A DNA stretch of 64,000 nt, taken from contig CDRNST010000104.1 in NCBI GenBank assembly GCA_977016875.1, forward strand, positions 3,410,001 to 3,474,000. The letters are read 5' to 3'. The notes below the pieces were generated by a model. It had not been told where the DNA came from. It ran no database searches and saw nothing but the letters and a program-made list of their open reading frames with translations. Below, one piece after another: positions 1,664 to 49,774 of this stretch (within the stretch, counting starts at the first letter, position 1; every line of letters starts with the position of its first letter). The position numbers and the translations under genes were made by a program. The stretch is from Pavona decussata (taxonomy: Eukaryota).

Positions 1664-3403
1664 TTAACTGTTATTTATTGAGTGGTTTCTTACCTCTAGA
1701 GCGCATCCGCAGGGGTAACCACATCCTCCGTATCCCAAGCCGCATCCCCCGTATCCTCCGCATCCTCCATATCCTCCACATCCCCAGCCTCCGAGAAAGG
1801 GATACCCGTAGCCATAGGCTGATAATCCGTATCCTCCCAATCCGCTGTATCCGAGTCCTCCACAGCCAGGTAATCCCAGGAACGCAGGCCCTCCACAGCC
1901 GCATCTCTTTTCAGCCTGGTTGGCGTTGTCTGAGGATGGTGGTTTACAGCCACAGTCACCTTTGTCTTTCTTTTTGTTCTTTGCTTCGGTATTTTCATCT
2001 GTTTCTATTTCGGCTTTGTTTTCTGCTGGTGTTTCTTCATCTGTTTCTCTTTTTGGTTTCGTCTCGGGTTGCCTGGCTTTACCTTTTTCAGAAATCTTGG
2101 ATTTGTAGAATCCGCAACCACACCCACAACCTGGACCCCATCCCCCGAAACCTCCATAACCCCAGCCATTACCAGGGAAAGCACCCCATCCCCATCCACC
2201 TTGGCCATATCCTCCCCATCCTAACCGACCACATCCTAATCCTGCACATCCTAAACCTCCACACCCTAATCCTCCGCATCCACCACACCCACCTAGTAAA
2301 CCACCACAGCCTCCAAGCAAGCCATATCCACAGCCTCCGAAGCCACCATAACCGCACCCTCCAAAACATTTCTTGTCGGCCTTCCCGGGCGCGTCGCGCT
2401 TGCTTTTCTCTCCTTTAGCAATTTTGGACTTATAAAAACATGAACCGAAAGGATAATGACCGAGGTAAGGGCTGAAGCTACCAAAGGCGGGAACACCGAA
2501 GCCAAGCCCTGGATGTCCGTAATTAGCCCAACCGGGATATCCGAATCCAGCGGGAACAGCAAACGGGGCATATCCACCATAACCGTAAAACCTCTTTTCT
2601 ACATTCCCCCTTCGGTTGGGATTTTTCTTATCGGTTTTTGGAACACCAGAGCGGAACAGGGCGCCACCATAATATCCTGGATAGGGATACAATCCATAGC
2701 CAGGAAAGGCGCCGAGACCATAGGCGTACGGAGCTGCATTATAACCACCCCAAGGGACAGCAAAACCACCAAAATACCCCCCGAGACCATACCCCCAGGG
2801 GTGCTCAACTCCAAATTTCTTAGATGAACCTCGACTTCTTGGACCTTTTGGTACATTAGACTTGTACCAATAGCCAGGCCAGCCTAGACCGGCTCCGTGA
2901 CCATATCCCGCTCCAAGTCCATGTGCAGGCCAAAAGCCAGGCGCGGCACTGGGATAAAAACCTCCAAACCCAAGTCCGTGGAATGCACCCCAACCAGGAT
3001 AACCCCAACCGCCAAACACACCTTGACCAGCATTGAACCATCTCTTAGAACCTTTTTGTTTGCTCTCTTTTTCTTTTTCTGTCGCTCCATCTGACAGTTC
3101 GTTTGATTTATCATCGTTGGTTTGTTCAACAGAGCTTGTATCGTTCTCGCTTTCTTCAACCTGTTGTTCTTTTTCGTCTTCTTTGGTCTCGGATTCGTTT
3201 TGGTTATCTTCTGCCGGCTTGTCTTCATCCTTCTCCTGTTCTTGATCGGAAGATTCAGGCGGTGAGTCTTCTTCGGGTTCGTCTCGTTTTAAGCGCTCTT
3301 TTCCTTCATTATTCTGGGATAGTGGCTTACTGTGTACCACGAGAAGACTTCCTAAGACTAGAAATACTAAAAAAAGGGAACAATTAAGTCGCAACGCAGC
3401 CAT
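1664..3403 (-). CDS. Secreted Gly/Tyr/Trp- and Gly/Cys-rich modular polyprotein precursor (cluster gene 1, ~579 aa)
   Basis: First in-frame ATG is at 3403 (the ORF track starts at a TTG). Signal peptide MAALRLNCSLFLVFLVLGSLLVVHS, then an acidic propeptide and five Gly-rich modules each opened by KR/KK; four end in [KR]S-x-[IV]. A possible splice donor (GAG|GTAAGA at 1693) makes the last 10 codons uncertain. Confidence 0.88.
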   Translation of the reverse strand: MAALRLNCSLFLVFLVLGSLLVVHSKPLSQNNEGKERLKRDEPEEDSPPESSDQEQEKDEDKPAEDNQNESETKEDEKEQQVEESENDTSSVEQTNDDKSNELSDGATEKEKESKQKGSKRWFNAGQGVFGGWGYPGWGAFHGLGFGGFYPSAAPGFWPAHGLGAGYGHGAGLGWPGYWYKSNVPKGPRSRGSSKKFGVEHPWGYGLGGYFGGFAVPWGGYNAAPYAYGLGAFPGYGLYPYPGYYGGALFRSGVPKTDKKNPNRRGNVEKRFYGYGGYAPFAVPAGFGYPGWANYGHPGLGFGVPAFGSFSPYLGHYPFGSCFYKSKIAKGEKSKRDAPGKADKKCFGGCGYGGFGGCGYGLLGGCGGLLGGCGGCGGLGCGGLGCAGLGCGRLGWGGYGQGGWGWGAFPGNGWGYGGFGGWGPGCGCGCGFYKSKISEKGKARQPETKPKRETDEETPAENKAEIETDENTEAKNKKKDKGDCGCKPPSSDNANQAEKRCGCGGPAFLGLPGCGGLGYSGLGGYGLSAYGYGYPFLGGWGCGGYGGCGGYGGCGLGYGGCGYPCGCALEVRNHSINNS

Positions 3404-4309
3404 AGTCTTCCGCGAGGAACGAAAGACCAAACTACGCCTTTAGTGAGACCACAATGTCTTTGCAAATGCAAAAGCCAACCTTACGTAAGTTATTAAATAT
3501 TCTTTTGTAATATAGAAAATAACGTGGCAAATAAAACATTAAAAAGACAAAACATTTTGCGTGTAGAATATTGTCTTCAGAATTCCAGGGCAAGCAATAA
3601 TTTAATTAGGTGAAAATTTATCAATATATTTTGTACGTTGCAAAGATGCTAGAATAAAGTTTGCAGTGGTGTGGATAGGGAGTATTTGATATTACTATTT
3701 CTTACTCCCAAGAAAAGTGATTTATCTTATTGCAAACCAACATTAATAAGTTATTTATGTCACCTGTTTAGAAGTCACGGGAGGGCAATTTTGCTTTGTT
3801 TGAGTAGTTATAGTTGTTTTGGCGAAGTTAAGTGACTACAGGTGTCCTACCATATTTGGCAAGACCATAAAGTGTTCAGCTACACGGAGCGACGGTTAAT
3901 TTGAAAGAAAAACGCGATTATCGCTGCCCACATTTAAAGAAAAATCATTACCTGGTTTGTTCAGTTTCTCCCCCAAACGAGGTGGCAAGTACCATGCTTT
4001 GAGCAAGCGTGATTGGTTGGGTTTAGGTTTACAATTATTTCAGTTTGTATTCCAGTTTTAACCCAAGGTACTTTTAAGACAAAAGTTAAAATAAAAGAAC
4101 AAACTATCGAGAATATTTTACAAACTGTGTTCTAAGTCAACATCATAACATTCATAAACAACTATATCTTAACGTGAAATTTATTTCTTGTGAACGCTTT
4201 ATAAAGAAGGCTTCAACATTTTTTTCTGGGCTTTAAACATTAAGAAATCCTGTTGTTATTTACTGGACTGTACCTCGAACGTGATTTAAAAATCTTCAAA
4301 GGTGGAAAC

Positions 4310-8330: not shown

Positions 8331-11300
8331 ATGTTTGGCCGGTCGCCGCCAAATATTCTGGCGACTTCAGTAGTTTGTTTCTTACTCTTTCTTCAATTTC
8401 AGTGGTCTCCAACGCAAGCGAAGCCTTACTCAAAACAAGAGTTTTTAAGTACATATACAGCAGGTAACCTTGGAGGTGTCCGTGAAGAAGATTGGCCGGA
8501 ATTTGTAAACTATAATAATGGACAAAATATAGAAAGAAGTAAGAGAAGTCCAACTGAAGTGGAAGATGAAACACTGGACAGTTTGGTAGAGAAAACTTTA
8601 AGTGTAAGAGCTCGAAAGAGACAAGGTATTGAAACGCCGATACAACCTTTGAATTCAGACTCTCCTTTAGATCTTCCACACTTTAGCACTGAAGAACATG
8701 TTCGCTCAAAAGTTAACCAACCTGATAGTGAATCGGTTGGTGTAACGGTGGAAGAAGAAAAGAAAGCAGATGACGACATCTCTAGTACGAAGGATTCGAA
8801 AGGAGGTGATAATAACGTCAAGCCGGCAACGGGAAATGAATCAAACGAACTGCATCAAGACGAAAATGTTTCTTCGAGTAATGAAAATTTGAACAATAAC
8901 AAACAGAGAGGAACAGAAAACAAAGAGAATTTAGCAGCACAGGATAAATCTGATTCCAGCAAAGTCAGTCTAAACACTGATTCAAGTACTGACAACAAAA
9001 ACAGTAAAGATACTGGGGAAAGCAAAGCAGACTTGAGCAGGTCCGTTGATGAAAATGCACAAGTTCGTACGGTCCAAGGTACCAGTCAGATAAATAAAAT
9101 TGGCAATATTCCTAATGACAAGAGCGGTTCAAAATCTACACCACTGGACAACGATCAGTCTAGTTCAGTTACCGCTAGTACCAAAACAAATCAACAGGAA
9201 ATCCAAACTACAAATACAAATAATGCCAACAAACAGCAGGTAGACACCGACGTAAGTAAACCCACCGCAGCGAAACCCGAAACATCGGGTTTAGTTTCGA
9301 GTAATCAAAAACCGGCAGCTCCTTCAGAACAACGTCCACCAACTAACTCCCAGTTATCCGAAGAAAGCAAACCGATAAACACAGTACCTCAAATAAAAAA
9401 TGAACCAGAGGAACCGGTTCGAGATGCATTGGGGAATAGTGGATCAGAAATTGTGACAACTCATTCTCCCCGAGAGCCTGAACCTGAACTTGATTCATAC
9501 TCAGAAAGAAGCGCGGAAGCGAAACCTTCTAATGGACCTGAGGTTGGACATTTTCAAGTAGATGACAAATCTGCCGATCTTGAAATAAACGCTAACTCTG
9601 CCGGGGTAAAAGTTAAAGCTAAACCCGCCTCGTTACAGGTGGTTTCACGCCCTGGTTCTCACGCCGCATCGGGGGCACAAGAGCGATCTTTGTTCGGCCA
9701 TTACCACTACCCGCCTTATCATGTTCATCACCACTGGTATCCTGGCTTGCGTAGGTCATACGGGCATTTCCACCGACGCCATTTCTTCAATCCTTACCCG
9801 CCTTTTCCTGAAAGGCGTAGTTTCGAACGCTTCTACGACGAAGCACCTTTCTACCGTCGCCGCTTGCACTACTGGTACCCTCACAGACATCGACACCATT
9901 TCCCGGATTCCTATTTGTACGAAAGATCCCAACTAGAGGAGCCGGAAGAGCCTTTAAGATATCGTCGGCGAAGACGCCATAAACGGCGTTTTAGGCATAT
10001 GAACGGTCCGTATCGACGCCAGTTTTATAACAACATTCCGATAACGAATGGCATGGAATCAACTCCGATGGGCGTGCCACCGGAAGAAGGAACAATGCCT
10101 CAGTTACCAATTGGCCCACTTCAACCATTTGCACAGCGGCAGAATATTATAACGCCAATGCCACCTCCGATAAACGTTGCTGGAAATCCACCGCCTGGCT
10201 TACTTGGAGGAATGAACGCGGAGAACTTTCCAATGAACGAAATGAGCAATTTTAATGGGATAAATCAAGTAAATGGCGCATTTAATGGGATGGGTAATAT
10301 GGGCACAACGGGATTCAATTCTCCAGAACAAATTGGCGCCATTGAAGGTTTACCAGTTGGAATGAACGGTGGTTTGGAAGGAATGCAAGCAGCTGAACAG
10401 ACACCCGGTATAACCAGAGAACTACCAAACAGGAAAACTTTAGCTGAGGAACCAAGAAAGGCATTCAAGAAGACTGCGATCGTTTCTGGGAAGAAGGACA
10501 ACCACACAACAACTAAAGAACACTCACACGATCAAAATACAGCACTTAAGAACAAACACTCAGAAGAAGGTAAAAAGATGCAGACAACTGGCAGCACAAA
10601 GAAAGCAAAGATAAACCTAAAAAGTTGGGAAAAAACTCTCAAACGTTATCATCGACTCAATAAGTTTACGTCAAAATCACACGAAAAACATCAATTTCGT
10701 AGGAGTACCAAATCTTCTTCTTTAGACTCGGAAACAAAGAACACTGAAGGAAAAGTTCTACAAAAACACCGCATCTCGCATCTTCACTCACAGCGTGCAA
10801 AAGACACAAAAGGGAAGCGAAAGAACGAGATTATAATGCACCGTCCACCAATCATATATCACCCTCCGCCTGAAATCTATCACCGCCCTGACATTGTGGT
10901 TCACCGTGCACCGATTATGCTGCATCGGCCGCCTATAATTTACCATCAGCCTCCCGTTGTTGTTCACCGACCAGCAATCATCTACCATCAACCACCCATA
11001 GTCTTCCATCAACCTCCTCCAATGGTCCATCAGCCAATCCTGCGCTCTCACGACACATGGGTGACAAAGCCTGTGGTGTATCACACAGCATCCACAGTTT
11101 CTCACGATAAGACATACTTTGGAGTACCGTCTCACGTGTACACTGGCTCTTATGGTGAAGGATGCCACGGAGGACATTGTTCTTACAGAAAAGGAAGTGT
11201 GCCACATAGAAATAATTCCCAAGCTACCCTTCATAAGATAAAAACAAAACGCGACAGTTTGAGTGACTATATGGCTTATTTTACGTCCTTGTGGAAGGCT

Positions 11301-14300
11301 AATGGCATGACCAAAAGAAACGTTCATGATGACTACGATTTTATCACGTCAAGGGATGGTGCAAAACAAAAATTAATTTACACAAGTGTGAATTCTGGTG
11401 GGATAAGTAAAAGAGACAGCGCTACAGATTACAACAGATACATTCACAGCATATGGAACCATAAAGTCAAACGAGAAGCTGGTGATTTAAAAAACGGAAC
11501 AGAGAAGAAAAAGAAGAAAGACGTCGTTGTCAACCGCCCTCCTATAATTTATCATCCTCCACCTGAAATTTACCACAGGCCAGACATAGTGGTACATCGC
11601 CCTCCTCTTGTGATTCACAGGCCACCCATTATATACCATCAACCACCAGTAATAGTTCATCGACCAGCCGTGGTGTATCATCAACCACCGATTGTATTCC
11701 ACCAACCTCCCCCTGCAGTTAGCCAGCCTTTGCTGTATTCTCACGACTCTTTCACTGTTCATCCTACGTTCTTTGCTACACATCATGGTTCTGTTGTGCG
11801 AGACTTCGGGCACTATGTAGGGGTTCCAAATGTCATCACTAATTACGGAAACCCACTTTTTGGGAGAGGACCGCCCATTGGCAAGAGATCAAAGATAGAA
11901 ACGCCAAATTCAGTTAACGAAACTCTATCGAAAAGCTCAAATTCAACGGGGACTACGTCCAAGAAAGCCACAATTCAAGACAACAAGAAAAAAGAAAAGA
12001 ATGACACTAGTGAAAAAGCAAAGAAAAAGAACACTGTTTTGGTTCATAGGCCTCCAATAATTTATCACCCACCCCCTGAAATTTATCATCGGCCTGTGAT
12101 TGTGGTACATAGACCACCCATCATGATTCATCGGGCACCAATATATTATCATCAGCCGCCGGTGGTTGTTCATCGTCCTGCTATAGTGTATCACCAGCCG
12201 CCGCTGATATTTCATCAACCACCTCCAATGGTGCATCAGCCAATACTAAGGTCCCACGATACGTGGATATCTCACCATGTGGTGGTTCCTTACTCCTCAA
12301 GTGTTATGCATCACCACACCTACGTTGGCGTGCCTGACGCATTTACCGTTCATCACTTCGCAGGAGGACACAGCTTTTATAAGTCAGACATTTTAAGGCA
12401 TAACGACCGAGATAATGAACGTGCATCTGAAAGAAATGAAATAACTGGTAAGAAAACGTCGACGGAAAAACAGAAAGATTTACCCAAGAAGCACAAAATT
12501 ACTTCACATGATAAAACCAAACACACTTTGAATCTCAAAATTAAGAAGGCGGCTGCTCAAAAGGGCGGAAAGAAAAACGCAGTCATAGTGCGACGTCCTC
12601 CAGTTATTTACCACCCACCACCAGAAATCTACCACAGGCCAGAAATAGTAGTTCATCGCGCTCCTATTGTAATTCATCGAGCTCCAATAATTTACCATCA
12701 ACCTCCTGTGATTGTACATCGACCTGCTATTGTGTATCACCAGCCGGCGCTCATATTTCATCAGCCGCCACCTATTGTACACCAACCGTTTTACAGATCA
12801 CATGACACCTATGTCCATATGCCAGTTGCGAGACTATACTCATCTCGGATAAACCATTTAGGACACACGTACCACATTCCACACGCCTACTACCACGGTC
12901 ATGGTGGTGTTATTCACCATATGGCTTATGACAAATCTAAAGTACCTCAAAAGCAGCATATTAAAGACGAAAAAGGGGAGACAAGGACCACTGTTAAAAA
13001 GAGAAAGAAGTCAAAAACAGAGAAAACTAGCCATCATGCAGAAAGAAAGCATGCCACCTTAACAAAAAGCAAAGACAAAACAGAAACAGGAACAAAACTT
13101 CACAAGAATCATAAAATTCTTTACCATAAGGCAAAGGAGACTACAGAAAAAGCAAACAAAAAAAACTCTGTAGTTATACACCGACCACCAATCATTTACC
13201 ATCCACCCCCAGAGATTTATCATCGCCCAGACATCGTAGTGCACCGCGCTCCTATAGTTCTCTACCGTGCTCCGATTGTGTACCATCAGCCTCCAGTGGT
13301 GGTTCATCGTCCAGCCATTGTTTATCACCAGCCACCTATCGTTTTCCATCAGCCACCGCCTATGGTCCACCAGCCAGTTCTCCACTCACAAGATACTTGG
13401 GTGACCAAACCGGTAGCCATCCCATACGCATCTCATGTACATCACATAGCCACCTACAGGGGTGTTCCCCACGAAGAGATCTTTATGCATGGGATTGGCA
13501 CAGGAGCGTTCGGAAAATCCAGAGTTCCTGTTAGAGGGACCCGCAGAAACAAGATAGATAGTGTTGGCGATGAGAGAAAGAACCAAACAGACAACAAAGA
13601 AACAAAGGAAGCGAAAAATTTGAACGAGTCGAATGATAAAGGGAAGAATCGTACAACGAGAGCTGCATACAGTGAAAAGCAAGGTAAAGATACAATAGGA
13701 GCAGCAGAGAGAATAATACGAGCATTAACGGATTCACTTACAGATAAACGATTGGAATTTATGGTGAAGAAGAATCCCATTGGAGTTGGTGCAAGAATCC
13801 AAAGAAGCCTTCAAAATATATTCCCTGTGTATGGAGACTCTTTATCACTAACTGCCTCAAACCCTCATAATTCAATCAAGATTCCAGGACAATCTGTCGG
13901 TGCGGTAACGAGAATTCAACGATCCAACGGTGCCTTTTGGAGTCCGGTGGGTGCTGGTGCTAGGATACGGAGGGCCGTAGCAGAGCCATGGAACACTCTT
14001 GAAGGTGAGAATCCATATGAAATGAATAAACGTAGTAGTGAGGAAAGTGAAAACCCCTCTACACCTGACGAAAATGCAGACAAAAACACTAATAGCACCA
14101 AAAAGACAATACTTATAATTCGCAGGCCACCGATACTTTATCATCCACCAAGCCACATGATCCATCGACCATCCATAGTTGTTCACAGGCCGGACATTAT
14201 AGTCCACCGTCACCCCATCGTCTTTCACAGACCACCAATACTAGTTCATCGTCCCCCAATCATAATCCATCGCCAACCAGTACTTATTCACAGGCCGCCA

Positions 14301-17300
14301 GTAATAGTTCATCGACCGCCATTGGTGTTTCACCGGCCACCTATAATTATTCACCGTCGTCCTTATATTATTCATCATCATCCTATTCTGTTCCATCGAC
14401 CACCAATTATTATACACAGGGGACCGCAAATGATAGTGCATCACTCCCACCTAATTCATCATTATCCTATGCACATGATACACATGCACTGTCCTGGTTG
14501 TGGTTTTGGAAAATCCACCGTTGCACGATTGCAAGGTAAAAGAACTGATCAAGACGGTAAGAAAACATCAAATTCAGACAGACAACATAAAGACGCTACT
14601 GTCAAGGACTCCCAACGGAAAGATTCTAACCTGCCAAAACGCTCTGTTGCAGACAAGAAGTTAAAGAAAAGTTCCCGAGAAGAGGACCATAACAAAAAGA
14701 AGAAAGACGGACACAAAAAGAAGAAAGACGTAGTAGTCAATAGACCCCCGATTATTTACCATCCGCCACCAGAGGTATACCACAGACCAGACATTGTTGT
14801 TCATAGGGCTCCCATTCTTATTCACAGGCCACCTATTGTATACCATCAACCTCCTGTTGTAGTTCACAGACCAGCGGTTGTTTATCACCAACCACCCATT
14901 GTGTTCCACCAACCTGCACCGGCAGTGAATCAACCTCTGCTATTCTCACACGATAGTTTTGTTGTACATCCTATGGCTTTTGCATCCCACATGGGATCTG
15001 TTGTAAACGACGCTGGTCATTATGTTGGTTTACCGCACGGTGGAGTAACTAATTACCCAGGTTCTATATCCCATGGACCAACAGGACACATCATTCCTTA
15101 TTTAAATCCACCCAACTGGTCAAGAAGAGCTCAAGTTTCTAAACCGCTGGACGAAAAGCATACAAAAATCAACCATGGGAAGAATAACAAAGACCGGAAA
15201 CGTTCCTCTGGGACGACTGATGGCACTCACAGAAGAAGCGCAGGAAACAGTAGGAAACTTGTAATACAGGAAAGCAAGGAGACCAAAGGTGAGAGAAAGA
15301 ATAAAGTTATCGTTGCACGACCACCTCTGATTTATCACCCACCACCTGAAATTTATGATCGCCCAGACATTATTGTACACAGACCAGACATTGTGATCCA
15401 TCAACCCTCAGTTGTGTACCACCAGCCATCTGTAGTAGTCCACAGGGCACCGGTGGTTTATCATCAGCCTCCTGTTGTATTTCACCAACCAGCTCCAATG
15501 GTTAGCCAACCAGTGTACCACGCCCATGACACGTACATGGCACACCCCGTATATCATCCGCAAGAGAGCCACATTTCGCACTCTGCAACATATGTAGGAG
15601 CACCTCATTACTACCCAGGATACAACAGTTACGGATGGGGCTTACAAGGGAATATACCCACTGCACATATACAGCCAACTCCACAGATCCCTCAATATGG
15701 TTATACAACTGGTCCTACTCATCCTGGTTTCAGTGGATACACACCATATTCAGCCTCCCTTGGAAATGCCTTCGGAAGATCAAAGGTAGAAAATAAAAAG
15801 AAAGATAAATTTAAAGACAAAGAGACAAAATTGAAAAATGCTACCAAAAAGGGTCGTACGAGCAGGTCCGTGGAGTTAAGCAAACGTCACGTGCATCACC
15901 ATCATCATCACCACCATCGTCACCATCATCATGGCATTCATTATCGCGGAAGGAAACGCTTTTATCCTCTCCATCCAATGGCATCCTTTGCCCATCCAGG
16001 ACATCGCAAACATGTCGTCATTATACACCAACCTCCTTTGATATATCATCCACCGCCGCAAGTTTATACTCGGCCAGACATACTCATGCGTTTGCCTCCG
16101 CTTGTTTACCACAGGCCAGCGATAATGTTTCAACAGCCACCGACAGTAGTCCATCACCCCCAAATAGTTTATCACCAACCTCCCGTAGTCTTTCACAACC
16201 CTCCTTCAATAGTACACACACCAGTTATTCACACGCGCGAGATGTTGTCACCTCACCTTCAGCATGTAATGATTCCAACATCATCGTACATGCACTCTGT
16301 TGGAAACTTTTTTGAGCCTGGTGTCTCAGGTACGGCATACGGAAAGGCTCACATAGAGCGAACCGACGCAAGCAAAGACTCTTTGAAGAGCGAAGCTGAT
16401 ATGGAGACGAAAAGCAAGAACAAGAATGAAAAATCACACGAAAAGCGAGACGTTTCTAACGAACCTGAAAAAGAAATGAAAGATACGAAAATATCAAAGA
16501 AACAGAACGTTGATCTTGTAGTCCACCAGCCACCAGTGATGTATCATCCGCCACCGGATATCATTGACAAGCCAGCTGTTGTAATGCACCAACTTCCGAT
16601 AGTCGTGCACCGTCCGCCCATACTCATACACAGACCTCCTGTTGTGGTCCACAGCCCCCCAGTGATAATACACAGAGCTCCAATTGTACTTCATGACACA
16701 GCACCCGTGTATCATGTACCACATGGCAATTTCTTTCATCCAATGCGCTATGCTTTTGGAAAATCCACAGTAGAAGGCGAGAATCAGCAGCGAAACAAGG
16801 ACAAGCACAGCAAGGAGAAACATGATGAAAAGACCAGCCAGACGAAAGGCGCCAAACATTCAAATACTGAAAAAGCAAAAAGGAAAAACACCGTTCTTGT
16901 TAATAGGCCTGCGATGATATACCACCCTCCACCGGAAATCTATCATCGACCAAACATTATAGTACACCGCCCAGACATAGTCATACACCGACCATCAATT
17001 GTGTATCACCAGCCTTCCGTCCTTATTCACAAACCTCCCATAATCTATCGTCAGGCACCAGTTGTTTTCCACCAGCCTCCACCAATGGTGCATGAACCAA
17101 TTTTGCATGCACACGACTCGTACCTTGCATACCCTGTTGCACTGCCATACACATCACACATTCATCATGCAGCAACATACGTTGGGGCTCCACACTTTTT
17201 TGATCAGCCACATTTTGGTGGATTTGGTGGATATGTGGGGCATGCTTTTGGAAAATCGGAAGTTGAGGAGACCAAGAAAACACACCGCAGTGATGAAAAG

Positions 17301-20300
17301 GAAAGTAAGAACAAAAAACATACCAACACTGAGGTTAGAAAAAATTTAAGGTCAACGCGTGATGTGGACTCTGAAAAAACAACTAAAGAAAATAAAAAGT
17401 CAACCTCCACGGTCAGTTCTAAAGGGCACAAAAAGAACAAAGTTGTTATAAACAGACCGCCATTAATTTACCACCCGCCACCAGAGATATATGACAGACC
17501 AGATGTAATTGTTCATCGGCCGGATATCGTCATTCATCGTCCTTCTATTGTTTATCACCAATCATCAGTAGTTGTCCACAGACCGCCAATCGTATATCAA
17601 GCACCTTCTGTGGTCTTCCATCAACCGCCACCATTGGTGAATCAGCCCATAATGCACGCTCATGAAACTTACGTTGCTCATCCAGTACCAGTGCCCTACA
17701 CATCCCATATCCAGCACACATCAACCTATGTTGGTAGCCCACACCACTATCCTGGTGGATGGCACTATGGTTGGAGCCAACCTCAGCCGTATGGATTTAC
17801 CTGGAGTCAGCATCAGCCATTTGGTTTGGCATTCGGAAAGTCAAATGTGCCCGCAGCAAAGCTAAAGTCTTCAGGGAACCATAAGCCCGCAAATAAACAT
17901 AAAGTAAAACGAGCGGAGAAAGATCAAGCCAAAAAAAATGACAAAAACATAAGCCCAAAGTCTGAAGGGACCGGTAAGAAGAAAAACCAAGTACTTATAC
18001 AACGACCACCTTTGATATACCACCCACCGCCAGACGTGTACCACAAACCTGATATAATTGTGCACAGACCTGACATTGTTATCCACCGGCCTTCCGTGGT
18101 TTATCACCAGCCATCTGTTGTGGTTCACAGACCACCGGTGGTTTATCATCAGCCGCCAGTTGTTTTTCATCAGCCATCTCCAATGGTTAGTCAGCCAGTT
18201 CTACATGCACATGACACTTATGTCGCCCATCCATATTTTACGCCCTACTCATCCGATGTATATCACTGTGGAAGCTACGTTGGTGCTCCGCACTGTTATA
18301 ATGGCGGATGGGGGGAACACGGATATGGCTTTGCCCATGCCTTTGGAAAATCAAAAATACAAGTGGCTAACAAGAAACAAAAGCACCAAAAATACAAAAG
18401 CAAAGATCTAAAGGGCCACCGCAGAACCCTTGAGAAGGAAATCAAGGAGGCGGTGGATGAGATTAAATTAAAGAAGGAGGCCAAAAAGGGGATAAGGGCG
18501 AAAAAGAAGAACCTCGTCATAATGCGTCGGCCTCCTCTAGTCTATCACCCACCACCGGAGATTTATCACAAACCGGATGTCATTGTGCATAGACCCGATA
18601 TTGTCATCCACAGGCCTTCTGTAGTTTTCCACCAGCCTTCGGTTGTAGTTCATAGACCACCAGTAATTTATCAACAACCTCCAGTCATATTCCATCAGCC
18701 AGCACCCATGGTTCACCAGCCTATCCTTCATTCACATGACACGTATTTCGCGCACCCCCACTTTGTCCCGTTTGCGTCGCACTTACATCACGCAGGCAGC
18801 TACGTGGGTGCCCCACATTTTTATCCAGGAGGATGGGGCTTAGGAGGGCACACTGATGACTTTCACCACGCGTTTGGAAAATCAAAAGTCGAAAAATCGT
18901 CAAAACAGCATGTGAAGAGTGACCACGAGAATAAGGACGGAAATGATGACGATGGGGAGAAACGTTCTCCACCAGAGGCAACAGACTCTTCTGAGGAAAA
19001 TAAGCATAAAGGCAAAATTAAGGAAGCCACAAAAGGACACAAGAAAAACTTAGTAATCATGCGTCGGCCACCACTTATTTACCACCCGCCTCCAGAAATA
19101 TATCACAAACCAGATATAATTCTACACAGACCGGATATCGTTATTCACAGACCGTCAGTTGTTTTCCATCAACCATCCGTGGTGGTTCATAGACCACCAG
19201 TAATTTACCATCAGCCGCCAGTTGTTTTTCATCAGCCATCATCAATGGTACACCAGCCTATCTTCCATTCACACGAGACGTATGTTGCTCACCCTCATTT
19301 TGTGCCATATTTGTCCCACTTAACGCACGCTGGGTCTTATATAGGGGCACCACACTTTTTCCCAGGACACTGGGGACCAACACATGGGTTCGGACATTTA
19401 GCGGCACATGCATTTGGAAAATCCAAAGTAGAAAAAGCTGCAAAAAAAGTAAATACAAAAGCTGTGACTCCAAGAGCAAAGTCAGAGGAAGCTGTGCATT
19501 TTAAAACCAAACGAGAGGCAAAACATGAAAACTTGCATCGTGACTTGTCTGGTGTGAATCAAAAGGCAAAGCTAAAACAACAGTATTGGAAAGCCACGGG
19601 AGAAAAAGCAGAAAGAAAGGCTGTCCATTTACATCCCGAAAAGGAGACTAAGAAGGGTCACCATAAAGCACACAGAAAAAACTTAGTCCTGATACAACGT
19701 CCAGCTTTGATTTATCATCCGCCACCAGAAATCTATGACAGACCAGCTATCATTGTTCACCGACCCGATGTCGTCATTCATCAACCTTCCGTGGTTTACC
19801 ACCAATCTTCGGTGGTTGTCCATCGTCCACCAATTATATATCGCCCACCACCAGTAGTATTCCATCAACCAGCACCAATGGTACATCAGCCTATGTACAC
19901 TTCCCACGACATATATCATAGTCATCCGCACTTTGTCCCATATGCCTCTCATATCAAGCACACACAAACCTACGTAGGAGCACCGCATTACTACCCTGGA
20001 GGATGGAGGTATGGCTACGGCTTTTCTGAAGCCTCTATACCTCAACACGCTGGATTAAATGGGTGGAATGCATTTAACAGTCCATGGTATCAACCATCAC
20101 TTTACAGAGCGAATTACCTTACACCAACTGGTGTAGCATCGCCCAGCGGTATCCGCAGAAGATACCAGTCAGCATTTGCCAAGTCTGATGTTCAAAAGCA
20201 CGATGCGAAAACCGAAGACTTGAAGGACAATCACAAGAAAAAAGACGAAGGTAGCCAAAAATCGCATCATGTTCAAGAAAAAACAGGAAAACGAAATCGC

Positions 20301-23300
20301 CGCTCAACCGAGTCAACTAAGAGACGCCAAGGAAAGGGGCGCAAAACGGACGAAGGAGGCAAGAAGAACGTAGTAATGATAAGACGGCCTCCACTTGTGT
20401 ACCACCCACCTCCAGAGATCTATCACAAGCCAGACGTAATTGTGCATAGACCTGATGTAGTTATTCACCAGCCTTCTGTGGTATACCATCAACCTTCAGT
20501 TGTGGTTCACCGTCCACCAGTTATTTACAACCAGCCTCCGGTGGTATTTCATCAGCCAGCTCCCATGGTAAACCAACCAATTTTTCATGCGCATGAAAAC
20601 TACATGGCCCACCCTTACTTTGTTCCTTACGCAAGTCAGATCCATCATACTGGTACTTACGTTGGAGCTCCTGAATTCTTTCATGAAGTAAGGGCCTTTG
20701 GAAAGTCAGACGTTTCAAACAACAAATCAAAGTCTAAGAAGCCACACGAAAAGTCTGAAAAGAAAAACAAAATGGTGAAAATAGATAAACGAAAGAGCGC
20801 CAAGGGAATGGTTTTCCATCCACAAGAAGAAAGAGAAGAAAAACCATCAAGAAAGAATGACATAGTTGTTAGCCGTCCTCCTATTATCTACCACCCACCA
20901 CCAGAAATTTACCATCGGCCGGATATTGTAGTTCACAGAGCTCCTATAGTGCTTCACCGCCCACCGATAATCTATCACCAGCCACCAGTAGTTGTGCATA
21001 GACCTGCTGTCGTGTACCATCAACCCCCAGTAGTCTTCCATCAACCACCTCCCACAGTTCATCAACCCATTCTTCATTCTCACGATTCATTTGTTGTCCG
21101 CCCAGCCGCCAAATTCTTTCCACAAGGCTCTACGTTAACACATACCATGAATTATGTGGGAATTCCTAACCATGTAATACATGGTGATGAACTAGCGTTT
21201 CACCACTTTCATCGATCACAAATAGAACATTCTGGTAGAGATACATCGTATAAGAAGCCATCAACTGTCCAAGTGGCGAAATCGACCATCTCTAAAATAC
21301 CTACAACTAACAAAGAGAATACTCAAACAACCATAACAGACCAAACGCAAAAGAAGACTTTGCGATCTATCATACGTCACCACAAATTAACTAAAAGACA
21401 GCTCATTGGTTCACATTCACTTTTTGGATCCTTTTCTCCTATAAACAACATTCAAGATTCTGAAAAATCGGTTGAGCAGAACGAAAAGCTGTCAACTATA
21501 CCCGGAGATACATCAATTCGTGAAAATAGCATTGCCAAGAGGCAACTTATTGCACCAGAATCTATCGAGAGTGTCTTCCCTAACTTTATGCGCAACTCTT
21601 TACCCTCAGTTTACAATACACTGGAGATGGCAGCTTTGCAAAACCAAGCTTTAGCAGCCTCTGAGGACTCACCAGTATCAGACAAGGTTGACCAGGTACA
21701 TTTGCCTGGTTTTACACCCACTTTACCAACACTTCATGGTATAGGAAGGTCTGGAATTGAACGGTACCCTTTTCTTTTAAAACATTACCTGCCAGGAGCT
21801 CCAAAAGATGACTCGCCGGACGTACGCGTTCACATAGAAACAGCAAAGTCCTCTATACCGATTAAAGCACGTGGAAAGCGGCAGATTATCCCTATATTTC
21901 AGCAGCAAGAACCACCACAAGCATATCCAGCACTCTATCAGTCGCCAGGTCTTGAGAATTTGGAAGGGGCTATCCGCGAAGCTACACCTTCCTCCGTTTA
22001 CCGCCTCTTCAGTCCATACAATGCGATGAGTCATCCAGGTGCAGATCCATATCACTATCTACGAATCCCTTCCGCGTCATTGCATCATCCTCGCGTCAAT
22101 ATCAACGTGCAGTCAGCAAGATCTACGATACCTCACATTGGCCATGCTATTCAAAAGCGATCAAACAACAAAAAGTCAAAAAGACAGTTTTTGGCGGTCA
22201 TGCCACCTCTCTCTTCCCGTTTACCCGTTGGCTTAGGGGGTGGGATAATGCCCCTCCCTTTCTCACCTTACTCGGCCCTGTCCCGTTTCCCATATCCACT
22301 TTTACCCCGTCTAGACTATCCTCAAGAACCGGAAACCGAAGAAACCGCATTCACAGAAGCTTTACCAGTTCTTCCTCGTCCATCATCAATTCCTCATACT
22401 CCATACAGCGGATTTTCAGAAGACCAAGACAATGACTCACCGTCATTCAATCCAGTGGCTTCATACTTAGCTGCACTTTATAATGGCTACTTTGGGTACC
22501 CATTTTATCGTCCCCATAAAAAACCTAAAGTCCACGTGGAGGTACACGCATCAAAATCACAGATACCCAAAGTCACAGAGAACAGGAAATACGGTCATTC
22601 TCGTATTTCTAAACGGCAACTGTATAATTTCTTACCACGTTCACCAGTAATCGCAAATCACTATACCTTGCCTGCAGCTTTAAATTACGGAATACAAGGG
22701 TTTCACCAGAATTCTCCGCATGTAAGCATTAACGTAGAAACAGCAAAGCGTCAAGGAATTCCTTCATTGTTAAAGGAAAAGAGGTCCCCAGTGGCAAAGA
22801 AGTTAAAGCAACACGAACAAAGAAGAACTGGAGATAAAAGAGACCAGCTTTTACAAAACGGAGAAAATGGTCAGGAATCTTTTCCATACCAAGAAAACTC
22901 GAATTCTGTTGCAACACAGGATAATCAGTTTGTTATTTCAAGAGAAAGCAGTCAACCACAAGAGGAGATCGCTACAAACAACAACGAGATCGCTCAACCA
23001 CTAGCGCAACAGCAGCTTCTGCAAGAAGCGGCTGGGCAACAGCAAGAGCAGCAAGAAGCAGAACAGCAACAAGAAGAGCAGCAACAAAGACAGCTTGAAC
23101 AACAAGAGCAGCAACAGACCATAGTACAACAACCAGAACCTTTTCCCAACCAACTGACAATGGAACCGTTCCAAGCTCAGCAGCTAGCTTTTCGGGCACC
23201 ACTGACTCCAATGCAAGTACCAATGCAGCCACCAGGGCAACCAGCTTTTAATGCACCTTTTGTGGCACCATTTATGGCTCCTGTCCAAGGTGTGTTCCCT

Positions 23301-32756: not shown

Positions 32757-32766
32757 CATGTATAAA

Positions 32767-39159: not shown

Positions 39160-41130
39160 ATGGTGGCCTTTCGGGGATTGTGGCTGTGTCTTTTAGGGAT
39201 TGTGTTGTTTAGTTTTTCCGCTGGCGTTCATTCAAAGGGAACAAAAACCAAACGAAGCCCAAGAAAAAATACCGTTCGTTATACCGTTCATGAAAAACCG
39301 CCAGAGCTGGTTGTGAATGCAGATCCCGAGGGAGTGAAAGTTCAAGCCAAACCTTCAAAGCTTCAAGTTATAGCTTACCCTCATTTGCAAGGTTTTAGCC
39401 CTTACGAACACACAGCAGTACTAGGTCCACACAGCCCGCCCGTGAATATTGGCCCAAACGCACCTCCAGTTCACATTGGACCTCACGTGCCAGCTCTTCA
39501 TCTTAGCCCTCGAGTTCCAAGCCTTCATTACGGCACTAACGCGCCTCTTCTACACGTAAGGCCTCATCTTCCATTTGTTCACATGACTCCTCCCGTACAC
39601 GCCGTAAACGCGCTCACTGGTCCTCCAGTGCACGTGTTGTCGCCATCGACAGTGTATCATCAAACGCCGATTGTTTTCCATCAGCCACACTTTAATTATC
39701 CCTCGCACTTTAATTATCCCACCCCAGCGTTTGGTGGATATGGTCCAATGGGAGGTTATGGCCCAGGATTCGGTGGTTTTGGCGGAGCTCCTGGTTTTTT
39801 CGGACGTTCTACGATACCTGAAAATGATGAAGAAGACGAGGAGGACAGTGATAAAGACCCTGAAAGTGATTCGCATAAGAAAAAAGGCAAATCAAAACGC
39901 GAGGTTGTGTCACAAAAAGTTAAACGTCAGTGGTTTGGTTGGCATCCATTTCCCCACACTGTGAACGTAGGACCACACACCCCACCCATCCACGTTGGGC
40001 CACATTATCCCCCTGTCCACATTGGCCCTCACGTTCCAGCAGTCCATATCGGGCCTCATGTCCCAGTGATTAACGTTCCATCCCATGTCCCCGCAATCCA
40101 TGTGCGCCCTCATGTTCCTGCTGTGCATCTTGGACCTCCCGTTCCTATCATAAATGCAGGAAACCACTTCCCAGCTGTGCACGTTACGTCACCACCTACC
40201 ATCTACCACCGTCCTCCTATCGTCATCCACCAACCTCATATTGTTCATCCTTATGGAGGATGGAAGAAGAGATCAAAAATTGCCAAAGCTGTGGACTCAA
40301 AAGAAGAGAGTCCGGAGAAGACTGAAGAAGATGAGGCCGAGCAGAGCAGCGGAGAAGAAGAGACAAAAGAGCAAGCCAAGGATATTGAAGACAAACCTAC
40401 AGAGCAAGCAGAGCAGACTCCCGAAGAATCGAGTGGAGAATCACAGGAGGATAGCAGAGAAACACCCCAAGTAGAGGAAGAGAAGAAAGAAAGCACAAGA
40501 TCTGTCGAAGAAGCTGACGTTCGACCAAAGCGTCAGATGTTTTCCAATGCTAATTCTGGACCAAATGGTGATTCAGTAATATTCGTTCACCCGAGCGAGC
40601 ATGGTGCAGGAAATCCCGCGGGACTAGGTGAGTTGGCTGGTGGTCATGGTAATCCGTTGGAAGGCGGCAATCCAGCTGAACCTTTTGGTGACCTGTCTTC
40701 GAAGGCATTCGGAGAAGGATTCAATCCCAGCTCCTTCCCAGAAGGAGGACCTGGAGGAGAAATGGGTACCGGTGGAGATAGCCTTGCTGGACTCGCAGGA
40801 GCAAGTCTCGGGGGAGCGGCAGGTCTTGGAAGTAATGAAGGTCCACCCATGGGAGCTAACAGCTTTTCTGAGGCTGGAGGATTAGGTGGCCTTGGCGGAC
40901 AGGCTGCCCCTGGAGGCGAACTTGGAGGACTTGGAGGATTGGGTGGTGCAATGGCCTCGCCAATGGCAGCAGGTCTTGGTGGAGAGGAAGCTAGATCTAC
41001 TGTCCCACGTTCGTTTATTCCTAGAAAGCTTAGAGAGATAAGCAGAGGCTACCTTACAAGAAACCCTCTTGACGATGGGCGTAATGCAGCCATAGTCAAG
41101 AAAACGCAGATTCCACGACCAGGACAGTAG
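39160..41130 (+). CDS. Secreted His/Pro/Val- and Gly-rich modular polyprotein precursor (cluster gene 3, ~656 aa)
   Basis: ATG at 39160 (the ORF track starts at an upstream TTG). Signal peptide MVAFRGLWLCLLGIVLFSFSAGVHS; three modules separated by acidic spacers and KR sites, ending in RSTIP, RSKIA and RSTVP; AATAAA at 41203. Confidence 0.92.
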   Translation: MVAFRGLWLCLLGIVLFSFSAGVHSKGTKTKRSPRKNTVRYTVHEKPPELVVNADPEGVKVQAKPSKLQVIAYPHLQGFSPYEHTAVLGPHSPPVNIGPNAPPVHIGPHVPALHLSPRVPSLHYGTNAPLLHVRPHLPFVHMTPPVHAVNALTGPPVHVLSPSTVYHQTPIVFHQPHFNYPSHFNYPTPAFGGYGPMGGYGPGFGGFGGAPGFFGRSTIPENDEEDEEDSDKDPESDSHKKKGKSKREVVSQKVKRQWFGWHPFPHTVNVGPHTPPIHVGPHYPPVHIGPHVPAVHIGPHVPVINVPSHVPAIHVRPHVPAVHLGPPVPIINAGNHFPAVHVTSPPTIYHRPPIVIHQPHIVHPYGGWKKRSKIAKAVDSKEESPEKTEEDEAEQSSGEEETKEQAKDIEDKPTEQAEQTPEESSGESQEDSRETPQVEEEKKESTRSVEEADVRPKRQMFSNANSGPNGDSVIFVHPSEHGAGNPAGLGELAGGHGNPLEGGNPAEPFGDLSSKAFGEGFNPSSFPEGGPGGEMGTGGDSLAGLAGASLGGAAGLGSNEGPPMGANSFSEAGGLGGLGGQAAPGGELGGLGGLGGAMASPMAAGLGGEEARSTVPRSFIPRKLREISRGYLTRNPLDDGRNAAIVKKTQIPRPGQ

Positions 41131-43305: not shown

Positions 43306-43367
43306 CGACGGTGCCTCCTTTTGTTACTGCGCGTCTCGAGATACTCGGGTTTCATATGGGTGGTTCC

Positions 43368-43405
<38 letters not shown>

Positions 43406-45266: not shown

Positions 45267-46139
45267 TGAAATTCTCAAGTGGCGCTCTTTATAAGTATAA
45301 CCTGAGGTGTCGAACAGAACTTTCTGTTTGTGCTATTTACTGTTATGTACCGCCCATGTTAGAACTTTTTAATGCATGTATGACTCCTTAAGTAGAACCA
45401 TTCAATAGCCAGACTTCCTTAAACAAAAACAAACTGTAAGTATTGCAATACTGGCCAAGTAGAAATGTAACCTCTTTCTTTTAGTTCAAATTGTAGATAA
45501 TGTGATAGATTAACCAGCATGGTTGATAGCATGAAAAAAACGAGGTGCCAGCCGGTTGGTTGCCTCTCACAAAGCCAAGTGAAAAGGAAACATTTTCAAT
45601 AGTGATTTATTAACATTGCCTGCAGCTTCAAACTAATGTAATAAAAACTACTTCAACTCCATAATTTCCCATTTAAGCAAGGTTCACAGAAAACGGAGTA
45701 AACACTCAAAAGCCGATGGTACTTTTATGATTTAACACTGGGTGTGATAATTTTCTATTTCGATTCTCGATAGTGTTTCCTATAACTGAACGTAAGGTTT
45801 ACTGTTTTCCTATGAATGTCGGCTTGTCTTAACTTCTCCATACATACCTTTTTCATGGGCCCGTACTTTTCGGTCAACCCTTTGAGAGGGCTCATAACCG
45901 CCCCTAACCTTAGTAATATGGCATTTTTAAAAATGATGATAGAAATCAATCGCAAAGAATTAGGCCACTTGCTGGCAAAGTTATTTATTATTTACCATAA
46001 ACATGATATCACCAGAAATTATCCAATGAAAATAACAAAAACGGTAGCGATTTTACTTTGCTTCTATCGCAGTAGATATGGAAATTTTTCGTCTTTAAAT
46101 CGAAAAAGTGGACCTGAATTTTTTTCCACAAGCACAAGC

Positions 46140-47205
46140 ATGACATGGTTTAATTTGGGCGATGGAGTTCGGGTGATAATATGTCTTGTTTGTTTGTGCC
46201 ATTGTTTTGGAAGTGTTAATCCAAGAGCATTACCCCAAGATGGTGGCACAGTGACTCAGACTGGTGAACCGTCACATTTTCAAGTTGATGACAAGGCCGC
46301 TGAGATTGAAGTAAACGCCAATCCTGCTGGGGTGAAAGTTAACGCTAAACCAGCGTCTCTTCAAGTTGTAGCAAAGCCTGGTACACCAGCCGTTCCCATA
46401 TTCCATCCATCAATTCATTTGGCTCAGCACTATGCGCCACCACCGGTCATCCATCACGAACCAGCCATGTTTTATCACGGTTGCTTTCATTTTCCCTATT
46501 GTCACAACTGGTTCTACAATGGAATCAAACGAGAAAAGTTTCCAAGACCACAAAACGTTGAAATTAATATCAGGACACACAAATCGGACATCCCGCGAGG
46601 AAATAAGCACAAAATGGGGATTAAGTCCCGAAAACGTCAATTTATATCCGCTGCTCCACAACTTGTACTACCAACATCGGTTGGTGCTTTGGGAGGGCTA
46701 AGCGCTTATGGCGGCTATGGATATGGGGCGTTACCTCAGTATGCTCCATTAAGTTCGGTTTCAAGAGCTTATGGCTTTCGACAAAGTCCTCAAGCGCGAT
46801 TATTTGCATCACCAGCGCAGCTACTCCCTCAGCAAGGTCTCCAAGAGACTGGTCTTACAAGAGGCCTTGTTCCTACAGTGGCAAACGACCAAGACAATCC
46901 TGAAGTTTGGCGAGGTTATTCAAAGCTTTACAGTGAGCTGAATACCCTTACTTCTATGTACAACGCCTTCTTAAGACAAAGAAGCCTGAATTCTCTACAG
47001 GGTTTGGGTTATGGTAGTGGCTTAGGTCTTGGTGGTGCGACAAGTTTCAATGCGGGAAGGAGTGGTTTAAGTTATGTACCCGCAACCCTAGGAACTTCTC
47101 AGTATAGCGATGCAATGATGGGTTACGGAAAAGCTTACATCCCTTCCCCATTGTCCCAGCTTTATGGGTCACAGAGCTCTCTTGGTCAGTCCAACGGACT
47201 CCTTG
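46140..47205 (+). CDS. Secreted modular polyprotein precursor (cluster gene 4), exon 1
   Basis: ATG at 46140 gives the signal-like MTWFNLGDGVRVIICLVCLCHCFG. Contains HFQVDDKAAEIEVNANPAGVKVNAKPASLQVV (near-identical to gene 2) and an RKR-Q module. Phase-1 donor CTTG|GTATGT at 47206. Confidence 0.85.
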
Positions 47206-48677
47206 GTATGTTTACACAAAACTCAAATTTTTACGTTGTTTGTTTGTTTATTTTGTTTGTTTGCTTGTTGTACTGTTACACTGTCCAAATGGCATCTGGT
47301 GTATTGGAGGATAACTCCCGAGGCTAAGAGTGGCTTGTGAAGAGGCTCTTCAGCTACAGCCCTAGGTGCAGTGCTTTCGGAATATAGTATCGGTATTATA
47401 GTGGCAATTTTATACAGTTCCAAGCGAAAGAGACACAAGAACAGTCAATCAAACAACTTGATTTTAATAGTTCACTCCTAAAATTAAAGTTTAGTAGAGT
47501 TTTCCTTTACGTAATTAGTTTACCAACCACCCCCCCCCCCCCCCCAGCATTGTTATGCTTTAAAACGCCAATCGTGTTTAACTCTATCTAGACCGTGCTT
47601 TTTTTGTCTTTTCGGGTAGTTGGGGGAGGGAGGGGTGGGGGCGGGTTTCCCTCTATATCTTCGCAAGTATAAAAGCTATGACAATGAGTCTTACAGCATA
47701 GATAGTTTGTCCAAAGATATTTCCTCTGAGGTCCGCAACGAGAAAAAACTGAAAAAAAAACTGCCGGTCAAAGGACACTAACCGAGTATATAAAAAATTT
47801 TCGTAGATCTAGTTAGGTTTAACGTGTTCAAATAAAGCTTCCTGTTGAGTATCTTATATTAGATCCAGAATATGAAAAATTGCACTAAGGAACAATTTTT
47901 TAAGGGTAGCAGAGACAATCGTTCAGTTCGTGGAATTATCACGTGATTTAATGGCAGGCTGGCGTTATTGCGCGAGGTGTAAGCAAGTACAACTTTATGG
48001 GTTTCTTGAGAACTGACTGAATCTAGCTTTTTCAACATGTTTTTCCTTTCATCGCTACAATCGGGGGAGGAATATTCGGGTAATCAGAGGGGGTACATCG
48101 TCAGATACCAACTGTATCATCTAATGTTTTTTTGGGGGGGAGGGGAGGGGCGTTGAAAGAAAATGTCTGTCTTATCAGATGGAACTTTGATTTGCCCTTT
48201 TTTTGTTTGTTTGCCATCATCTAACGCAACGATAGTAACCTAAAATTCATTATCACCCATATAAAACATGAACCTGATTATATACAAAGAGATTTATTTA
48301 TTTGTCAATTCAAAAGGAATTTGGCAGTTTGTCTGCCAATAAATAATAATGGGAGGAGAAGCAATCGATTTTGTCGTGTGGAGACTGTCTGCAGTAGTCT
48401 GGTATTAAGAGTAAATCAGTTGCACCGGCAATGTTGGCAGTTCAAAACTTTTCTTTGATGAGTAGACTTCATACCTAAATATTGGGTTCCTTTGCTATAG
48501 TTTGTGACTCATTCGTGCTGTAAAAGTTCCATTGCATAGTAGTCTACTGTGAGAACTTTGTTCAGTATAGACCTTCGTTTCGCAGCTTAATACTAGAAAT
48601 AATTTGCTTTGATGATATGGTTTTTTGTGATGTGTTGGTAAAGCCATCATTTTTCAACTTGTGTTTGTTTTCTGCAG

Positions 48678-49774
48678 GAGCTTCACTAGTCAACCAGCAA
48701 GCTATGTCTCCATATCTGGTATTCTCACCTGTTTTGCAGCGATCACCATTAGTTAGTAGATCCAAGGTTCCTACAGTGTCGGCAAAGAAAGCGAAAAAAC
48801 CGCAAAAGGACAAAGGAAAGGTTGACGTCAAGCGCCAAACCTTGGTTGAGCCAATTTTGTCTGAAGAACCAAACAGCGTGGATGATTTATTACAAGACGG
48901 CATGTCTCAAGACTACAAGCGTCAATTTGTACTGACTCCAGCTCTGGAAACGCTGCAGCAAGTGCAGCCATTGCAATCTACGTTCTCACAGGAATCCTTG
49001 CAGCCGCAGCTACGTCAGTTGCAGCTGCAGCAGCTGTTACAAGAGCAGCAACAAGCACCACAGTCGTTAGGGCTGCAGACGGTGGGAATGCAGTCTGTAG
49101 CTGGGGTCCAACCAGTCGGCATGCAGCAGCTAGGCATGTCAGGCTCTCAGCAACTAAGAAATCTTCTTCCATTACAATCCTCGAGCTCGCCACTCCGTTA
49201 CCTGACATCTTCGCTGGTGTCACCTACGGAAGGCCTTAGTTCTGGCTTGATTGCTAGACCACAATCGAGGTTCTCACCCAGTATGATATCGCCAATGGCA
49301 TCACCTTTGATGTCTTCATCTCTCGATTCTCCAAGTTTAATGTCTCCATTACTCTCCAACGGGTTTTCTCATCCTCGTAATACTGATGTCTTCCAAGACA
49401 GATCACTATTTCGTCATCCACTGAGAGTTGGATACTCGGGCTATCCAAGGCGACTCCTTAGAGGACCTCAATACCGTCGACGATTACACAACTTCCGAGA
49501 AGAGGAGGGCTTAGATGGAATACAACCTGAAATTCTAGGAAAGGAGGAAATCACAACGCCGGGATCTTACACCACTGAACGCGTACCCGACTCTGAAGGA
49601 CAGACTCTTATAAACTCGCCCGTGGGATTTGGACCGATCACAGTTGAGGCTAAAACTGCAGAGGGGGCAAGGATGGCGCAAGCCAATGCAGAAGATAAAA
49701 GACACAATATTAACAAACCAGTTCAAAAAAATCACAGAAGGAAGTTAAAAGACCAAGACCATTTGTTGAACTAA
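48678..49774 (+). CDS. Cluster gene 4, exon 2 (spliced product ~720 aa)
   Basis: Acceptor gtttgttttctgcag ends at 48677 and is phase-compatible with exon 1 (G|GA = Gly). Completes a module ending RSKVP, followed by KR-Q modules rich in Gln and Ser. Confidence 0.85.

Follow-up and report, generated by a model that had tools for sequence, protein, structure and literature searches.

Background

The cnidarian neuropeptide preprohormones, among them the Nematostella precursors of the RFamide, LWamide and HIRamide peptides, begin with a signal peptide and carry many peptide copies between spacers, with KR-Q at the peptide N-termini and with C-termini at a single basic residue that follows Gly and is succeeded by amidation (PMC11087051, PMC6756747). 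Mass spectrometry in Nematostella has detected both the KR-Q N-termini and the amidated C-termini at G-K or G-R, the established cnidarian amidation signal (PMC11087051, PMC6756747). Nematocyst structural proteins and toxins, such as Cnidoin and the minicollagens, are secreted cnidarian proteins that bear propeptides ending in KR, and their mature part begins right after this pair (PMC4321713). Here we describe a short motif, [KR]-S-x-[IV], that recurs at module ends in four genes for putatively secreted polyproteins of the coral Pavona decussata (assembly size 602 Mb). The genes lie within a 64,000-nucleotide stretch of contig CDRNST010000104.1 (positions 3,410,001-3,474,000), which is called the window below; feature positions are those of the window unless a contig is named. 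The motif is found where a low-charge segment, the putative cargo, gives way to a charged spacer.

The coral polyproteins have the layout of the preprohormones, but their cargos are low-complexity, structural-type segments of 50-190 residues rather than peptides of 3-20 residues, and one precursor is 6058 residues long. Moreover, most of the coral sites are without the Gly, and the prime-side sequence S-x-[IV]-P is not in the described cleavage logos. Cnidoin and the minicollagens differ in that each has one propeptide and one mature protein, with no C-terminal mark described. The motif can also be compared with classical monobasic and furin-type cleavage sites. (In this notation, P1 is the basic residue of the motif, P1' its Ser, P2' the free position x and P3' its Ile or Val.) In the extended furin motif, Ser is common at P1' and an aliphatic prime-side residue is nearby. 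The coral sites likewise have a basic P1, a small polar P1' and a nearby aliphatic residue; however, this residue is at P3' and not at P2', and only 6 of the 31 sites compared have a further basic residue upstream, at P4, P6 or P8.

In the Kex2-processed fungal repeat proteins (Ustilago Rep1) and the nematode polyprotein allergens, cleavage of one secreted precursor at basic sites yields many units that self-assemble or bind lipids. There the same dibasic site stands on both sides of a unit, whereas the two sides of a coral unit are marked differently. Finally, the gene 2 modules, through their Pro/His/Tyr/Val-rich composition, give borderline matches to the family of the Drosophila chorion proteins S36/S38 (Pfam Chorion_3; 21 and 25.8 bits, cut-off 22). 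These proteins lack the polyprotein layout and a common motif, and the likeness is probably compositional. Within limited access to the literature, no published description of the module-end signature was found, and searches for LOC5512467, SpisGene9031, PFX26305, A0A2B4SCY1, LOC144643886 and Chorion_3 gave no relevant paper.

A motif at the cargo-to-spacer boundary

Gene 1 (1664..3403, minus strand) is one open reading frame (ORF) of 579 residues that is rich in Gly, Tyr, Trp and Cys. Gene 2 (8331..26507, plus strand) is the 6058-residue precursor, also a single ORF, in which about 18 Pro/His-rich modules are followed by about 12 modules that start with KR-Q. Gene 3 (39160..41130, plus strand) has 656 residues and three modules. 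Gene 4 (plus strand) consists of exon 1 (46140..47204) and exon 2 (48677..49774), each of which was analysed separately. All four genes have a hydrophobic, signal-like N-terminal segment. There is evidence of transcription for two of them: gene 3 occurs in contigs of RNA-type runs, including coral metatranscriptomes, and for gene 4, RNA-type contigs (runs X8 and X10) span 46068-47204 while the splice joint 47204|48677 (GT..AG, in frame) is present in two RNA-type runs. Because this in-frame joint is seen, the motif copy in exon 2 (48758-48772) is coding.

A first-pass annotation of the window had reported the motif more than 30 times at the cargo-to-spacer boundary in all four genes. This holds: its 22 example strings are all present, and [KR]S.[IV] occurs 39 times (4 copies in gene 1, 29 in gene 2, 4 in gene 3 and 2 in gene 4), about 31 of them at a transition from low-charge cargo to charged spacer. 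Shuffling gives 9.3 +/- 2.9 copies when whole proteins are shuffled and 8.4 +/- 3.0 when residues are shuffled within blocks of 60, with a maximum of 19 in 500. When Pro is added to the pattern, 17 copies are observed against 1.0 in shuffles. The control patterns [KR]T.[IV], [KR]S.[LM], [DE]S.[IV] and the reversed motif occur at or below expectation. (Since about 15 Pro/His modules of gene 2 are tandem paralogues, fewer of the copies are independent than the raw count suggests.)

From the cargo side of the motif to its spacer side, the share of charged residues goes up by 0.26 and that of hydrophobic/aromatic residues drops by 0.34; at other Lys or Arg residues the corresponding steps are -0.02 and +0.04 (Mann-Whitney p 5e-13). 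When cargo-to-spacer boundaries are defined from composition only, the motif lies within 8 residues of 21 of the 45, compared with 6.8% of all such windows, and 7 more bear a close variant such as K-A-x-I, R-R-A-x-V or K-R-x-x-I. The opposite boundaries, from spacer to cargo, have a dibasic pair in 37 of 41 cases (28% background) and the motif in none of the 41. The motif is thus enriched, and its placement is strictly on the cargo-to-spacer side. In the logo of the 31 boundary copies, P1' is Ser throughout, P1 is Lys (18) or Arg (13), and P3' is Val (19) or Ile (12). Pro (13), Glu (8) and Ala (4) prevail at P4', Phe (16) at P3 and Gly (12) at P2, while P2' is free and mostly Lys, Thr, Asp or Asn. 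The annotation's further statement that the cargos are unrelated stands in so far as compositionally different cargos carry the motif; it does not stand for the many copies that belong to paralogous repeats.

The codons of the motif Ser are also uniform. All 39 are TCN and none is AGY, compared with 30% AGY for the other Ser residues of these genes (P about 8e-7). Half-motifs have normal Ser codon usage, and in one related species AGC is present at 3 of 16 motif sites. This suggests that the boundary element is of common descent and that the Ser is under strong constraint.

Conservation of the motif

Relatives of gene 2 comprise 16 coral orthologues of 4548-6329 residues, full-length in Stylophora and Oculina, and a 99% identical copy from the same species. 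The orthologues are 29-79% identical over the searched C-terminal part, and each contains 25-32 motif copies, compared with 6-9 in shuffles. In the 17-sequence alignment, conservation was taken as the share of the commonest residue at each position over 26 sites. This share is 0.94 at P1, 0.96 at P1', 0.89 at P3' and 0.85 at P4'; it is 0.59 at the free position P2' and 0.53-0.63 at the spacer positions P5'-P8', and the end of the cargo (P2-P7) has 0.72-0.84. This position-specific conservation is the strongest evidence for the motif. An internal control is provided by three matches in gene 2 that lie off any boundary and are not conserved in the orthologues (21747-21761, 22638-22652 and 22782-22796, plus strand); their positions are each kept in 6-88% of sequences, never all three together, and they are chance hits. 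Judged from these alignments, the motif is real and under strong purifying selection.

The individual sites bear this out. In gene 1, the four copies (2849-2863, 2639-2653, 2417-2431 and 2090-2104, within 2090..2863, minus strand) have two aromatic residues ahead of each, and all four persist in the aligned orthologues (P0028-P0031), even in P0031, which is 28-38% identical. In gene 2 (plus strand throughout), one copy ends the first small KR-Q peptide (8703..8717), and its Lys/Arg, Ser and Val are kept in 15 of the 17 sequences. Fifteen copies of 15 nucleotides each close Pro/His modules (11886..21227; starts at 11886, 12381, 12933, 13515, 14511, 15777, 16761, 17253, 17838, 18348, 18879, 19419, 20181, 20703 and 21213). 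At most of these sites P1 and P1' are kept by 88-100% of orthologues (lowest 75%) and P3' by 75-100%; the 15 spacer residues that follow are just 19-53% identical. Two further copies (21279-21293 and 21363-21377), in a Thr/Lys-rich stretch past the last Pro/His module, lack the jump in composition and are kept in all 16 orthologues. With the last Pro/His-module copy they form three motifs in a row (21213-21377), and the stretch itself, unlike the other spacers, is 79-85% conserved; it could be a set of small conserved peptides. Eight copies end KR-Q modules (21846..26453; starts at 21846, 22119, 22554, 23418, 24981, 25128, 25503 and 26439), and all but the one at 25128 close a longer tail, P-[RK]-V-S-I-N-V-E-T-A-K-S.

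The same constraint extends to sea anemones. At gene 3 site 1 (G-R-S-T-I-P; 39805..39819, plus strand), nine species, Nematostella (XP_048578595.1) and Actinostola among them, all have R216, S217 and I219, and the spacer that follows cannot be aligned. Site 2 (K-K-R-S-K-I-A; 40270..40284, plus strand) is a dibasic variant in which K-R and Ile are kept and the Ser is replaced by Asp, Gly or Ala in anemones. Site 3 consists of two adjoining copies (40993-41007 and 41008-41022, plus strand), and this doubling is found in Actinostola too. The mark at the N-side of the cargos is conserved as well, since R256-Q257 and R458-Q459 are invariant in the nine-species alignment. Both sites of gene 4 (46581-46595 in exon 1 and the exon 2 copy, plus strand) are present in the Actinostola orthologue, as H-K-S-S-I-P and as G-R-S-N-V-P followed by a Lys-rich spacer. 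(The Actinostola gene model QZH41_003850, at L001 20870-28346, fuses the gene 3 and gene 4 orthologues into one protein of 962 residues; the ORFs there indicate two separate genes, each with its own signal-like start.)

An exhaustive profile search with the gene 3 family returned only 25 representative clusters, one of which is a 5019-residue relative of gene 2 with 22 motif copies. Because all named relatives are stony corals or sea anemones, the family looks narrow; this set of putatively secreted polyproteins looks restricted to Hexacorallia. Public records describe the relatives only as 'uncharacterized' or 'hypothetical'. The genes are thus large, conserved from stony corals to sea anemones and, for genes 3 and 4, found in RNA-type contigs, yet they are without functional annotation.

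A putative processing site at the cargo C-terminus

The reading that we favour, with a probability of roughly 0.5, is that the motif is an endoproteolytic site that is cut after the basic residue and so sets the C-terminus of each cargo, with amidation likely only in the A-F-G-[KR]-S subset. In these proteins low-charge cargos (Gly/aromatic/Cys-rich, Pro/His-rich or KR-Q peptides) alternate with charged, fast-evolving spacers, each cargo having a dibasic pair directly before it and [KR]-S-x-[IV]-(P/E/A) directly after it. In the proposed mechanism, an endoprotease would cut between the basic residue and the Ser, with Ser at P1' and Ile/Val at P3' as its prime-side determinants, and a carboxypeptidase would then remove the basic residue. 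At sites with a Gly ahead of this residue (A-F-G-[KR]-S in the Pro/His modules, [FY]-G-R-S in gene 3), an amidating enzyme would leave a Phe- or Tyr-amide. The marks at the two ends of a cargo differ, so that a second enzyme may make one of the cuts, or one cut may come later than the other; the charged spacer could in that case be a solubilising tail that stays on until the cargo assembles.

Several properties of the sites fit this mechanism. Lys and Arg swap at P1 between orthologues, and at some orthologous or paralogous sites the equivalent tail has KR, RR, RK or KK in place of K-S; sister tails in gene 2 with K-R are an example. This use of either basic residue, together with the dibasic replacement, fits a protease site and argues against a Lys-specific chemistry. 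At gene 3 site 2 the K-R pair is followed by S, D, G or A with the Ile kept, and Nematostella has G-K-R-S at site 1 where others have G-R-S; the motif therefore behaves as a basic cleavage site in which a lone basic residue is supported by the prime-side Ser and Ile/Val. In addition, the terminal module retains the motif with merely 5 to about 45 residues after it, and P0066 ends five residues past the basic residue. The P1 and P1' residues in the logo agree with the first part of the classical monobasic rule, which allows no aliphatic P1'.

Other observations weigh against it. The second part of the monobasic rule, a second basic residue at P4, P6 or P8, holds for the 6 of 31 sites given above (11 of 31 when His is counted). 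Neither gene 1 nor the KR-Q modules have the P2 Gly, and it varies at three Pro/His sites. Peptides of the Nematostella orthologues are absent from the searched supplements of two Nematostella peptidomics studies, although this is weak evidence as those lists are neuropeptide-targeted. Finally, the conservation of P3' and P4' fits equally a binding or modification motif that is never cut. (The supplements of an anemone matrisome paper and of two Stylophora/Oculina skeletal proteomes likewise contained neither Nematostella orthologue peptides nor the Stylophora accession.)

These points bear on two earlier proposals. The first-pass annotation had suggested a dedicated second protease. A selected, polarity-specific short motif with a basic core and dibasic swaps fits the protease site; a dedicated enzyme of distinct specificity is no more than possible, the sole hint being that only 6 of 31 sites fit the classical convertase rule. 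It had also suggested Phe-amides. Gly directly precedes the basic residue at 12 of the 31 sites, at most of which 16 of 17 sequences keep it, and the idea is retained for the A-F-G-[KR]-S subset; given its absence or variability elsewhere, amidation cannot be the general function. Two described protease sites were tried as matches and rejected. In the site-1 protease (SKI-1) pattern R-x-hydrophobic-x, the place of the hydrophobic residue (P2, two residues past the basic P4) falls on the free x, and for the furin minimal site R-x-x-R, P4 is mostly Ala (12 of 31).

The alternative that best withstands these data is that the motif is a functional short linear motif which is not cut, so that cargo and spacer stay joined and the motif docks a chaperone or an assembly partner or receives an O-glycan. 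(Ser with Pro at +3 favours transfer of N-acetylgalactosamine.) A single free position among three or four fixed ones is the typical pattern of a binding motif, conservation at P3' and P4' is on a par with that of the basic residue, and the monobasic rule fails at most sites. However, plain dibasic pairs take the place of the motif, with loss of the Ser, at site 2 of gene 3 and in several tails of gene 2, which is hard to square with a Ser-centred modification, and both the strict placement at the cargo end and the retention before very short terminal tails fit trimming better. We regard an uncut motif as doubtful.

It is also conceivable, but unlikely, that cleavage occurs by any basic-specific enzyme and that selection acts on S-x-[IV]-P, the N-terminus which the spacer thereby gains and which would act as a sorting handle (to a regulated vesicle or cnidocyst) or as a propeptide for the next cargo. 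The Ile/Val at P3' is kept even without the Ser, P4' is fixed site by site, and nematocyst proteins do use KR-ended propeptides (PMC4321713). Nevertheless, the first propeptides, right after the signal peptides, do not begin with the motif, and the tails that follow terminal copies have no cargo behind them.

A site of covalent chemistry, either a Lys cross-link made by lysyl oxidase or transglutaminase or a Ser phosphorylated by a secretory kinase, is very improbable. The near invariance of the Ser would suit it, and K-S and K-A resemble the cross-link sites of collagen telopeptides. The cross-link is rejected because Arg, which cannot cross-link in that way, occupies P1 in 13 of the 31 sites and is exchanged for Lys from one orthologue to another. 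The phosphorylation signal, which had been offered earlier as an option, fails since secretory kinases recognise S-x-E and the motif lacks this signature. Lastly, a passive relic, copied with the modules by tandem duplication and without function of its own, would account for the many copies in paralogous repeats and for a common descent as indicated by TCN at 39 of 39 Ser codons, but it is rejected as scarcely credible, being contradicted by a conservation profile in which the motif far exceeds the spacer-side residues across 17 coral sequences and the anemones, by the variation of the free x, by the decay of chance copies, and by the presence of the motif on compositionally different cargos.

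If the cargo C-terminus is indeed set by cleavage at the motif, then the motif would predict precisely where dozens of mature peptides end, large Phe-amidated ones among them, and would serve as a search pattern for further substrates and as a substrate with which to identify the enzyme among the numerous convertases that the genome encodes. Should the products make up a secreted material, they would be a new class of cnidarian structural peptides. A more speculative extension, which we put forward tentatively, is a two-key code in Hexacorallia: a dibasic cut would free the N-end of each block, and a separate protease that reads [KR]-S-x-[IV]-P would remove the charged tail later, and in so doing time the assembly of a biomaterial, possibly of cnidae or another secreted matrix. 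Such a code, if true, would pair a protease with a motif in a new way, and the peptides would be a new family that forms materials.

Processing enzymes, related loci and other features of the window

The P. decussata genome has at least 23 matches to the convertase P-domain, several of them in local clusters (C36, C52 and C529), which suggests an expanded convertase repertoire. Pfam Cu2_monooxygen is above its cut-off at several loci, although this family also includes enzymes of the dopamine beta-hydroxylase type. With these P-domain matches and copper monooxygenase loci, the general processing machinery is present and diversified.

The same grammar is found in other genes of the genome: a Gly/Cys-rich paralogue just upstream (C104 3408115-3409731), its neighbour (C104 3407297-3407794), a Gly/Trp-rich polyprotein 168 kb upstream (C104 3241001-3242053) and, on contig C150, a small paralogue. 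Some 40 residues near the N-terminus (H-F-Q-V-D-D-K ... V-K-V-x-A-K-P) form an element common to gene 2 (9537-9665), gene 3 (39277-39390), gene 4 (46200-46418) and the C150 paralogue (L014 5294-6157). Pfam gave no meaningful match for genes 1, 3 and 4, and a feature search of the ESM Atlas with gene 3 gave just weak, low-complexity matches from arthropods. In an AlphaFold2 model of gene 3 built from nine sequences, the mean predicted local distance difference test score (pLDDT) is 40; the only predicted structure is a confident helix in the signal-like segment (residues 2-25) and a beta-hairpin (residues 50-63), the latter being the shared N-terminal element. The model thus predicts a largely disordered protein apart from this short hairpin.

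Two assembly gaps fall in the window, and both are intergenic. One (27129-27259) begins 622 nucleotides past the gene 2 stop; the other (45041-45266) lies 3911 nucleotides past the gene 3 stop and 802 nucleotides ahead of the point where the observed gene 4 transcript begins. Neither gap affects a motif copy or a reading frame, and the C-terminal end of gene 2 agrees with those of its orthologues. Within gene 2, residues ~2520-2535 (window ~15880-15930) form a run of about 14 His with one Arg, in a spacer beside the Pro/His modules, that may be a metal-binding or pH-sensing element. In the intron of gene 4 (47638-47804), many short contigs of run X17, a coral metatranscriptome, pile up on about 35 nucleotides and have unrelated flanks, probably because these nucleotides belong to a common repeat rather than because the intron is expressed. 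Elsewhere on the contig, Gly/Ala runs make up most of an ORF of 892 residues (C104 3391626-3394301), which also has a segment rich in Cys and Pro and may encode a further secreted, low-complexity member of the cluster, and an ORF of 2172 residues 63 kb upstream (C104 3340976-3347491) has the character of a retrotransposon gag-pol.

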